From positions 8,184,001 to 8,248,000 of the forward strand of contig NW_026889752.1 in the NCBI RefSeq assembly GCF_033153115.1: 64,000 bases of DNA, in the 5' to 3' direction. A program made the position numbers and the translations under genes. Below the pieces are notes generated by a model. The model did no database searches. It was not told where the DNA came from and saw nothing but the letters and a program-made list of their open reading frames with translations. The first letter of the stretch is position 1. Each line of letters opens with the position of its first letter. The DNA comes from Saccostrea echinata. Its lineage: Eukaryota. Shown here one piece after another: positions 46,734 through 50,100 of the stretch.

Positions 46734-47156
46734 TTATCAAAGACCTTAATAGATGTATATTTAAAACAAATGCCTTATTTATTTTATATGTTTTATTCGA
46801 GTTGGCAGGTATTGTCCACAGTGGTCTACACAACAGTGGGGCAGCCGGCAAACTGGCACATCCCCCAACATCAACAATTAAGTTGTGCCCTGCCTGACGG
46901 GAAACGTAGCACGCTGGGTTGACCTCAACCGTGCTACGGACACATTAAAACACAAATTATCTTCAATTATATTAATTATAATTAATTATATCAATTAAAT
47001 TACAAAATTTTGCTTTAGATTTACTCTATATGAGATATAATTTTCAAAGTCAACATCACATATATCAACATCAACCATCACATATATCAACATCAACCAC
47101 AACAAATCAAGAATATAAATAGTTAAATGGTTAAATTGAAGGTGACGATTTCGCCA
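46732..47156 (-). repeat. B1 direct repeat (425 bp)
   Basis: Near-identical to 45746-46170. Confidence 0.95.
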
Positions 47157-50100
47157 CATGGGCACCGCAGGTGCCCACCGCCACCTGGTGGGGGTAGGCA
47201 GCTTCAATTTAACCACCCACCGTGGACCCCTAGCCTACTCAAAACCCTCAGCACCCCACCCACTGTGAATACCACTTTCTCGTTGTCTCCACTACTCACT
47301 GTATCTTCAATACAAGATTAAATCAATTCTTTATCAGCCATTCCTGCTGTATTAAGATAAATGATCTGGTTTCCCTACAAATTAAGTGTGCCTGAAAACA
47401 CTCCATCCCCTCCCTGGAATCTAGTTCAAGTTTTTGTTTATTCTGCTTTAGGTCTTTTTATTACTCTGATATTTTTAGTAACAACAGATTATTTTTACTG
47501 AAGCATGAATAAGAACTAAACTAGTCTGGTGTTAAGAAAATATGTAAATAATGTCAATCTCTAATCCCCACTTACCCTATTCTTGTATTTTTTTTAATTT
47601 GTTTATTCATTTTTTTAATTAATTTATTTATTTATTTATTTTTTAAGTAATTTGGAAAGTTCTAAACTACTTTCCAGCTGAGATTGCAAACAAGTAATAA
47701 ACAAGCACAAATCCTCTTTACCCCCCCCCCCCCTTTCCCATCTGCATATGGCTGCAGTTCCTGCATTGTGGACAATATTGCAATGACAAAAATTTTAACT
47801 GTTATCACATTCCCACTTTGTAAATTGCAGAACAGATTAATGTATACCTATCTCCCTGCTTTCTTTATTACCTAATCTGAAAAACCATTTTTGCTCAACA
47901 GTAGCTGCGCTGGTTCCAAAGGAATGAGGTCATACCACTTATTTTTGACACCAAGCTCTTGCCAAAGCCTCCCCATTGAAAATTGATTAAAAACATACTA
48001 ATTACCTTCCAACACAAGAGACACAATGGAGGACTATGAAATGTTTCCAAAGTACATTTTATTTGTAGATGAATATGTACTGCACCAGACATGAAGTACC
48101 TATACGACTAAATTATATATTCCAGACCCTTGCCCAGCTGATGCTCTCTCAAAATCTGCAACTTGTCACCTTAAACTTCTTACTTCAGTAATACTGAAAC
48201 TGTAACATTAACTCAGAATGGGTTACCCCCATCCCTCACCCCAAGGTTAAAATATGGTTAAGACTAGGTTGGGGGAAAAATATATGGACTTAAATCTGTT
48301 TTAAAATTGTAAATATGCATAATTATATGATGGCCAGCATACAAATTAATTGTCCAAGTGTGAGCTAAGGCAATGGCAACCTAGCTTTATTTAATACCCT
48401 AAAATGCTGGAGAAGTTTTGCTAAAATGAATCTTTAACTCCTTCAGATTTGCATTTGTACCCACCAGCTGATAAATGGATGTAAACTATATATGCATTGA
48501 CGATGCATCTGAATCACCTTTGGCATTAATATATAAACATAATTATAAAAGTACATGTATGCTAACTGCTTAGTTGAGGGGTGAACACCAATGACATATA
48601 TGTAATTGGCAATTGGGTTTGAAATGATATTTTTCGATGGAGAAATGCCCATTAGATATATGCATGATATGTGTCAGCAGTTTTTGTAGAATTGCTGTCT
48701 TTAACAAACCAGTAGCCTTACTTATGAGAACAACATACAAAACATTGCAGGAAATGGATCAGATTCTATTCAATTCAGGTCTGAGGAACAATATATGTCT
48801 AACCCCACCCCCACCCCCTTTCAACCCCAAGAATTTGCATCTGCTTGCATAGCAGATTAATAGTAAATCTTGCCTTATGCTCAGTTTTTTATGTTTTATA
48901 TTTCATGGTGAATAAAACCAGTTTCCCAAACATATCACCTTTTTTGAGTTTAAGAACCGTGAATTAAAATTTGAACTAAAGCAATTTTTACCTGAGTTAA
49001 ATTACAAATCTATTCATTTTTTTCCCACTTAGAGACACAAAAGACACCATCAATGATCAAAAATTAGGCCCCAATTTTACATAGTTTTATTATAGCCCTT
49101 TTTCCCCCTAACTGCTTGACCATTGATCAATGTCCCTTCCTAACCAAAAAACAAAAGATTCACATCCACAGTCTTGTCCCGATATGCCTGCATTGACTGT
49201 AACAATTTAGGAACCCTATAATTTATTCATTTGTCAAAACTAACTTACCCGAGATTGTAAAATGTCAGGAAATTTAAGTTGCATAATCATATTTTAAGGT
49301 TAACTAACCCCCTGATAAGACAGCTAACTCAATGGATTAAATGTGCATATTTCTAATAAACTTGTAAAGTTAAAATGTCTTTTGTGACAATTTTATCCTG
49401 AAACTATGCTAAAATTATCTGCATTTCATTTTATCTATTTATCTATTTATTCATTTTTTATTTATTTACTTAGACTTGTATTTGTAGAATTGTATTTATA
49501 TTTGAACCTCAAGGGCCCTCTTGTACCTAAAATTATCAAACAAGACCAGAAGCTTTTATTACATTGAAAGAAAACTCCCATGATGAAATTAGTTCCTACA
49601 TGTAAAATCAAACACTTTCCCAAACCTAAACAAGATATATTCTATATAATGTGATAATAATGTAAGTTTATTTGAGTTTTTGAGGTTAAATTGAGAAGGT
49701 ACAAAACTTTTACTTAATACAACTCTGTAAATTTATGTATCATACCCAGGGACCTTAGGGGGCAAGAGAGAGAGAGGACAATAAACATATTATCATTAAA
49801 CCTTCACTCAATTTAAGTACAGGCTTTATTAGAAAAGTTCATGATTATGCAAGGTGGACACAGTTTTGAAAATGACCAATTAGCCCGAACCTCCTTGATT
49901 TCCTTTATAATCTTAAAACTGAACCAATGAGCAGACACAGAATATATATCTGAAATGAGTCTTTGACCCCATCTTAATTAATCTGAACCCCTTTGGTATT
50001 CCGACAAGCAAAACAATACCTAGCCTTGATAGAATTTTAGTTAATTATTAAAAATATGGTGAACCCTATCTACCCTAAATGGTGAACAATTGTGTTTTTA

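Follow-up and report, generated by a model that had tools for sequence, protein, structure and literature searches.

Three divergent Ngaro-type tyrosine-recombinase (YR) retroelements in a 64,000-nucleotide (nt) stretch of the Saccostrea echinata genome (contig NW_026889752.1, positions 8,184,001 to 8,248,000; hereafter the window) carry the same structured motif, and a conserved word within it coincides with the start of the B repeat in every family in which both copies of that repeat could be mapped. The motif is about 60-110 bases long, has an RNA-like fold and lies 3' of the last gene in many Ngaro-type elements; its structure, conservation, position and coincidence with the repeat boundary are direct observations. 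A covarying, sense-strand motif at a fixed place, with a conserved word at the B boundary, has the look of a cis-acting replication signal, and we think it probable, without strong commitment, that it is such a signal in SGNH-carrying Ngaro-type YR retroelements, where it would serve as a priming or strand-transfer landmark. The unsolved problem addressed here is how reverse transcription starts, and how the split repeats are rebuilt, in DIRS, Ngaro and PAT elements. New are a covarying RNA junction whose key word stands at the repeat boundary to the nucleotide in ten families and, at a second marked boundary, a previously unnoted unique segment, X.

Architecture and covariation of the motif

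From 5' to 3' the motif consists of an outer stem, hairpin A, one or two unpaired bases, hairpin B, a conserved word that we call J, and the 3' strand of the outer stem, and the sense RNA is predicted to fold into a three-way junction. The outer stem (6-18 base pairs, bp) has a sequence specific to each family (at least 22 clusters) and links the end of the unique internal region, I, with the beginning of the B repeat. Hairpin A is formed by a C-rich strand (CCGCC or CC-C-CCAC), a loop and (G)UGGCGG; hairpin B varies in sequence and length and usually has a G-C closing pair. J, with the consensus WUKUGGC(R)NAW, is single-stranded between hairpin B and the outer-stem 3' strand and carries a second word, UGUGGCG, resembling the UGGCGG of hairpin A. 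In a divergent subgroup, CCCCA/UGGGG replaces hairpin A and is accompanied by AUGUGGCAUYUGCGC. In most families a GGUCAYGGC-like box stands 0-25 nt 5' of the outer stem; besides the copy listed in Table 1, the window has it at 26163-26179 and 27961-27973, both on the plus strand.

We refer to the non-coding element of the window as F1, the outer coding element as F2 and the inner coding element as F3. A first-pass annotation of the window, made from the sequence by eye, had quoted one site in each of these elements, and all three are present (Table 1). The window contains three matches to the pattern TGGCGGY..TGYGGYGA, compared with none in 100 dinucleotide shuffles. The host elements had been described as not otherwise aligning; blastn of the 1.2-kb surroundings found no significant similarity among the sites, and the elements are therefore truly divergent. 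The linking words, said to be conserved, are so across families, although the TTGCGGTGAA of the inner copy has decayed from the TTGTGGCGAA typical of its family. A position just after the SGNH stop had been claimed for both coding elements: it holds for F3, where the preceding open reading frame gives a weak GDSL/SGNH match and the motif follows its stop (26158) by 40 nt, whereas the frame before the F2 motif has no Pfam match and was read as SGNH by eye from a GNDI-like block. For the host elements as a whole, the RVT_1 and GDSL matches are weak and sub-threshold, and a YR-like HSFRIGAA motif was seen by eye in F2.

A covariance model was seeded on F1-type sequences and then rebuilt from nine sites of seven clusters to give model R2; MAFFT alignments had left the outer stems out of register, hence the one-family seed and the iteration. 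Model R2 recovers all three window sites, supporting the claim that they represent a single structured motif, and returns nothing else in the window below E 0.5. Its 23 sites come from 21 sources, which represent about 18 sequence clusters, and comprise the three window sites and 20 in other loci; every one of them lies on the SGNH-sense strand, 3' of an SGNH match. Across the 23-row alignment, 91.4% of the cells assigned to pairs hold standard pairs, compared with 63.0% after partner shuffling (0 of 500 shuffles reached the observed value) and 39-43% when partners were slid by 1-3 columns. Two-sided changes were found in 143 cells against 44 expected, and the covariation score was 0.742 against 0.195. 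Fifteen of the 20 pairs change on both sides, including 9/9 in the outer stem and 4/5 in hairpin B, so that the stems do differ in sequence yet still pair, as the first reading had it; in hairpin A the sequence is kept and covariation is slight. A covariance model, as had been proposed, and pair counts on its alignment thus showed compensatory changes, with the position of the motif kept in further families.

Tests that do not use the model point the same way. For each family, pairing between its native 5' and 3' flanks is stronger than between mismatched ones (mean -20.1 vs -15.2 kcal/mol, permutation p<=5e-5), and in 18 of 22 families, compared with 16% of chimeras, hairpin B is closed by a helix of 5 bp or more that is anchored no further than 3 nt from the conserved words. 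A best-helix test on wide flanks gave moderate discrimination, since AU-rich flanks pair by chance. Shared ancestry or chance, without function, is a hardly credible account of these results: all carriers are indeed related elements, but the stems change sequence completely and still pair, a covariation that contradicts this account, and the flanks are unalignable, the motif recurs in independent metagenome contigs and the pattern is missing from shuffled sequence.

A six-frame search of the S. echinata genome (923 Mb) with the SGNH piece of the inner element gave at least 150 matches, with identities down to about 30%. We sampled about 450 nt downstream of 100 of these SGNH matches and added window copies F1 and F2, giving 102 sequences in 32 clusters; the motif architecture is present in at least 22 of the 32, at 30-310 nt after the SGNH end. 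Among 21 metagenome contigs encoding SGNH relatives, all found by protein alone, 17 had enough downstream sequence, and about 10 of these 17 carry the motif, again with different stems. At the protein level, SGNH relatives were also found in named genomes of oysters, Mytilus and Mactra. Two loci (L090, about +290 to +350 after SGNH, and L119, about +270) show a variant in which UGGCG, a hairpin with a CCACCG loop, UGGCGG and a conserved tail are enclosed by a 7-bp outer stem. At another locus (L007:1430-1545), a copy of the F2 family has F2 similarity beginning right at TGGCGG and unrelated DNA upstream, which could reflect 5' truncation or insertion at TGGCGG.

Genome-wide, the sequence pattern gave 153 matches against 33 for a control pattern. 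We do not equate these matches with motif copies, as a sizeable part of them (several of 30 loci inspected) is an unrelated minisatellite with a TGGCGGCCGCCAGATAA-like unit of about 22 nt, seen in the S. echinata genome at loci L001, L003, L005, L010 and L016.

The non-coding element itself provides a further line of evidence. F1 and a coding relative share 78% identity over a stretch that begins at 47228, 13 nt ahead of the outer stem, and runs on through B1; upstream of 47228, patchy relics are all that remains. That a non-coding element retains the motif and the adjoining homology fits a cis requirement for the motif.

The B-repeat boundary

In F1, the B repeat had been noted to begin at the TGGCGA of the motif, and the repeat map agrees: the first letters of B2 are tggcgaaatc (from 46170 on the minus strand), the motif contains this word at 47156, where B1 begins, and both copies open with TGGCGAAATC. 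For five further families, we located the start of B1/B2 homology by self-comparison of the 1.5 kb downstream of SGNH. For four more, the genome was searched with queries of 420 nt that have the UGG of J at position 121; besides matches along the full query there was a second class of matches, and the starts were taken from the coordinates of this class (Table 1). In 10 of 10 families with both B copies mappable, the offset of the B start from the UGG of J is between -1 and +3 nt. The sequence before B2, which is the end of X, is neither conserved nor folded into a junction-like structure.

We considered the X end as a second copy of the junction and rejected this idea, as the X end carries none. 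The X-end/B2-start region of the window (46147-46247, minus strand) does give a weak match to the first model (16.3 bits, E 0.2), because the B start is shared with the junction and not because there is a second one. A second conserved box, CUGYNYCCCAGGGUC-like and possibly forming a small hairpin, occurs inside B at 26330-26350 (plus strand) of the window and about 50-100 nt into B in L038, L043, L087, L089, L106 and L131.

The two B copies are far more alike than their surroundings. In the L045 family, which has several identical or near-identical copies, B1 matches B2 with 100% identity across 438 nt, next to an I end and an X end that are unrelated, and this degree of identity in L045 contrasts with SGNH sequences that have diverged between families to about 30-45% identity. 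Such identity or near-identity despite unrelated neighbors suggests that B is probably renewed by copying one repeat from the other and is not the product of an ancient duplication, and the placement of the boundary suggests that the copying step starts or ends at J. The same argument ties the edges of long terminal repeats (LTRs) to priming sites.

This evidence bears on two other roles that an RNA element at this place could have. One is packaging, binding of reverse transcriptase or Gag, export or stability, with an overlap with the B boundary that goes back to the common ancestor and is not made by replication. Structured elements in 3' untranslated regions commonly bind retroelement proteins, and the non-autonomous F1 family keeps the motif; we nevertheless think this role unlikely as the explanation, since B1/B2 identity that runs right to J beside unrelated I and X ends fits a copying step better, and since the second boundary, between A and X, is also marked by a conserved tract. 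The boundary evidence thus favors a priming or strand-transfer landmark over packaging.

The other is a self-cleaving ribozyme of an undescribed class that would cut within J, near UGG/C, so that the RNA end would define the start of B. A compact, highly conserved junction with invariant unpaired bases and a boundary sharp to the nucleotide in 10 families would suit a ribozyme, and ribozymes occur in other retroelements, HDV-like (hepatitis delta virus-like) in R2 retroelements and hammerhead in Penelope-like elements. We nonetheless judge it very unlikely: Rfam contains no ribozyme that matches the site at E<=10 or seven other loci at E<=1, the junction strands (0-7, 1 and 8-25 nt) misfit the hammerhead, the strand order on inspection misfits the HDV double pseudoknot, and the position of the boundary varies among families, from -1 to +3 nt. 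The initial proposal of a cis-acting RNA for Ngaro replication is supported in part, the motif being conserved, covarying, strand-specific, fixed in place and located at the B boundary, while self-cleavage, one of the activities it had listed, gained no positive evidence.

Element layout and a replication scheme

Repeat mapping identifies the host element as having the split direct repeats of the Ngaro/PAT type, plus the extra unique segment X. The layout is A1-I-B1-A2-X-B2, with X after A2 and not after A1. X measures about 140-320 nt in every family checked, including L045 (L045:2808-3063), L053 and L043. The extent of A1 was taken from genome matches to the stretch between B1 and B2, and A1 copies cover the first part alone of that stretch (22-273 of 529 in the L045 family, 1-206 of 377 in L053 and 1-211 of 351 in L043). 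A C-rich tract (CCCTCCC or CCCACCC) lies directly after the A end, or at most 2 nt from it, in 4 of the 4 families with mapped A ends (F1, L045, L053 and L043), and a similar tract is found in the same B1-B2 interval of L058 and L054. Both inner repeat boundaries are marked by conserved sequence. An ATAATA overlap is present at the B1/A2 junction and at the element ends. The complement of the C-rich tract is G-rich, and a G-quadruplex could form in minus-strand complementary DNA (cDNA).

Table 1. Motif copies, parts of the F1 motif, repeats and B starts. Coordinates refer to the window; a slash marks the start of B1/B2 homology, and query positions count from a 420-nt query with the UGG of J at 121.
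Feature	Family or locus	Position	Strand	Details
Whole motif	F1	47128..47215	-	minimum free energy -48.1 kcal/mol, z -6.6; model R2 79.9 bits over 47133-47210, E 1.5e-20
Motif copy	F2	27976..28059	+	model R2 35.9 bits, E 2.6e-7
Motif copy	F3	26198..26295	+	model R2 20.7 bits, E 0.01; J word decayed by two transitions
Upstream box GGUCCACGGUGGG	F1	47216..47230	-	GGUCAYGGC-like in other families; by eye across families
Outer stem, 5' strand	F1	47202..47215	-	within I; all helix pairs change on both sides between families
Hairpin A	F1	47178..47194	-	C-rich CCCCCACC, 3-nt loop, GGUGGCGG with C/C mismatch; helix 2, 94.9% paired, sequence mostly conserved
Hairpin B	F1	47160..47176	-	helix 3; 4/5 pairs change on both sides
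J word AUGUGGCGAA	F1	47150..47159	-	UGG of J at 47156 is the B1 start
Outer stem, 3' strand	F1	47128..47141	-	inside B1, hence repeated in B2 at 46142-46155
A1 repeat	F1	51230..51465	-	blastn
B1 repeat	F1	46732..47156	-	98.4% identical to B2 over 425 nt (blastn)
A2 repeat	F1	46487..46737	-	blastn
X	F1	46171..46486	-	unique 316 nt between A2 and B2 (blastn repeat map)
C-rich tract opening X	F1	46470..46486	-	
B2 repeat	F1	45746..46170	-	blastn
B start	L058			cauu/UGGCGUAUGC
B start	L054			caug/UGGAAG
B start	L045, L046, L050			augug/GCGGAUU; 438 nt, 100% identical
B start	L043			uuuug/GCGUAAC
B start	L053			augugg/CAUCUGCGC
B start	L055 family			second match class starts at query 122-127
B start	L038 relative			second match class starts at query 123
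B start	L087 family			second match class starts mostly at query 123-126, range 118-126
B start	L089 family			second match class starts at query 120 in 13 copies, a few at 123-129

That the motif acts as RNA, and which enzymatic step uses it, are matters that we infer. Most likely, the reverse transcriptase/RNase H would begin its copy of B at this junction, which would be either the place where the second strand is primed, equivalent to the polypurine tract/U3 boundary in LTR elements, or a stop-and-transfer point. In the most economical scheme, which is retrovirus-like, plus-strand DNA would start at J on the minus cDNA, and the B-A unit would be copied and then placed at the other end. The start of B2, made up of J and the outer-stem 3' strand, would be the start site of the minus strand or, because B1 and B2 share the J word and this strand, might bring the ends together by pairing with the complementary, unique 5' strand of the outer stem, as its acceptor or primer-binding partner. 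The closed product would be a circle, B-A-I-B-A-X, that the tyrosine recombinase would open at the B/A junction to produce the genomic order. Such a scheme would explain where J lies, why B1 and B2 are identical and how the X-end/B2 junction arises. A permuted two-LTR circle was rejected as the full explanation, as X follows A2 but not A1.

A different possibility is that the fold forms in single-stranded minus cDNA, as a structure-specific site for the tyrosine recombinase or for circularization in the manner of attC, with the crossover or joining point on the strand complementary to J. Amplification of DIRS-1 proceeds by way of linear single-stranded cDNA (PMC7192593), and the antisense fold is nearly as stable as the sense fold. 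In addition, the I-end/B1 and X-end/B2 junctions share their right half and an overlap of 0-4 nt, like recombination products, and two UGGCG words flank hairpin B on opposite sides. We still consider this possibility quite unlikely, given that 23/23 model R2 matches are sense and none is antisense at E<0.5 (the model itself being built on sense sequences), that the stems contain G-U pairs, that the integration crossover is already explained at the B/A junction by the ATAATA overlap, and that the X end is without a matching left half-site. The small difference between sense and antisense stability leads us to favor folding as RNA, short of proof, and leaves some room for a fold in the minus cDNA.

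Several observations weigh against an RNA signal for replication at the B boundary. The sense fold is more stable than the antisense fold in 16 of 22 families, but the mean difference is a slight 1.4 kcal/mol. The pair counts were obtained from an alignment fitted to the structure of the model, and hairpin A seems by eye to be missing in some AU-rich metagenome variants. A simple LTR-like scheme leaves unexplained both the C-rich tract after A2 and the need for X. As for a tRNA primer-binding site, which would start with TGG and have at least 8-18 nt complementary to the 3' end of a host tRNA, B opens with UGG(CG) in most families, followed by the family-specific outer-stem strand, and by eye a match between the B start and tRNA 3' ends appears to end after 5-7 nt. 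A polypurine tract would fit by position in 10/10 families, but the stretch before B (..CAUGUGG) is not purine-rich.

If the motif is a replication signal, it may be more specifically the initiation device of DIRS-order elements: an RNA that creates or presents the primer, through self-priming by the outer stem or self-cleavage at J, and that together with the C-rich tract would define an LTR-like B-A unit re-made in each cycle. We put this forward as a doubtful but specific extension. In either form, the motif gives mutable targets for retrotransposition assays and for the mapping of cDNA ends, and the covariance model can be used to annotate such elements in the genomes of molluscs and other invertebrates.

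Two repeat features of the window lie outside these subjects. A tandem repeat at 10299-11011 has a 156-bp period and 3-5 copies that are 77-89% identical. Regions 11833-17227 and 32398-36936 share several collinear direct repeats about 20 kb apart and 74-94% identical, and which may derive from a segmental duplication or from two copies of a different element on either side of the nested YR elements.

Comparison with known systems

The comparison with Rfam suggested by the first-pass annotation gave no match to the motif in Rfam 15, whose families include HDV-like, hammerhead, twister, twister-sister, pistol and hatchet ribozymes and tRNA: at gathering thresholds there were no matches in the window or in 20 carrier loci, at E<=10 there were none on 46900-47500, and at E<=1 seven other loci gave two irrelevant weak matches only. 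ARAGORN found no tRNA-like fold in 12 carrier loci and Rfam no tRNA match in the window or the 20 carrier loci, on which basis a tRNA-like structure was rejected. The hammerhead was rejected on the lengths of the junction strands and the missing CUGANGA. An HDV-like fold was rejected because, by inspection, the motif has no P1 5' strand upstream of the outer stem and hairpin A is a local hairpin, and because the window has no RF00094-type match; twister was rejected on inspection and the Rfam results. The words UGGCG..GGCGAA resemble parts of the HDV genomic ribozyme, which we take as a lead only. Literature searches yielded no account of a motif of this kind in Ngaro or DIRS elements; in the papers found, the primer of the DIRS order was not known as of a 2020 study of DIRS-1 (PMC7192593) and hairpin priming has been postulated for DIRS (PMC7192593, PMC3601003).

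Like the HDV-like and hammerhead ribozymes of retroelements, the motif is a small structured RNA at a retroelement boundary, but it differs from them in having no Rfam match and in strand order and junction lengths. In common with the attC sites of integrons, which a tyrosine recombinase uses as folded single strands, it keeps its structure while sequence and length vary, it carries short conserved boxes, and a tyrosine recombinase is encoded close to it. In contrast, attC is a bacterial DNA hairpin with extrahelical bases, whereas here we find a three-way junction with sense-strand bias and a crossover at the B/A junction.

The epsilon/DR1 system of hepadnaviruses resembles the motif in that a short word, here UGGCG, stands beside a hairpin and is repeated at a distant 3' site, here the B2 start, and in that 0-4 nt are common to the donor and acceptor junctions. 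The two systems differ in architecture and in enzyme lineage, and protein priming is without evidence here. Self-priming in Tf1 and chromoviruses, in which the 5' end pairs with the primer-binding site, likewise involves an element-encoded duplex whose strands covary and whose edge is the repeat boundary. Unlike in Tf1, the motif is at the 3' end of the coding region and not in the 5' leader, and primer release by RNase H cleavage is without evidence here. We also considered a duplex between the C-rich strand and J as the primer and rejected it, as by inspection this pairing is not consistently supported across families.

Relative to the polypurine tract of LTR elements, the motif is a three-way junction with covarying stems and not a purine run, and it belongs to elements with a split A1-I-B1-A2-X-B2 layout that integrate by a tyrosine recombinase. 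The reverse transcriptase/RNase H of the DIRS order is nonetheless related to that of LTR elements, and the motif is like the polypurine tract/U3 boundary in lying directly 5' of the 3' repeat, in a fixed repeat start (TG in most families) and in the identity of the repeat copies.

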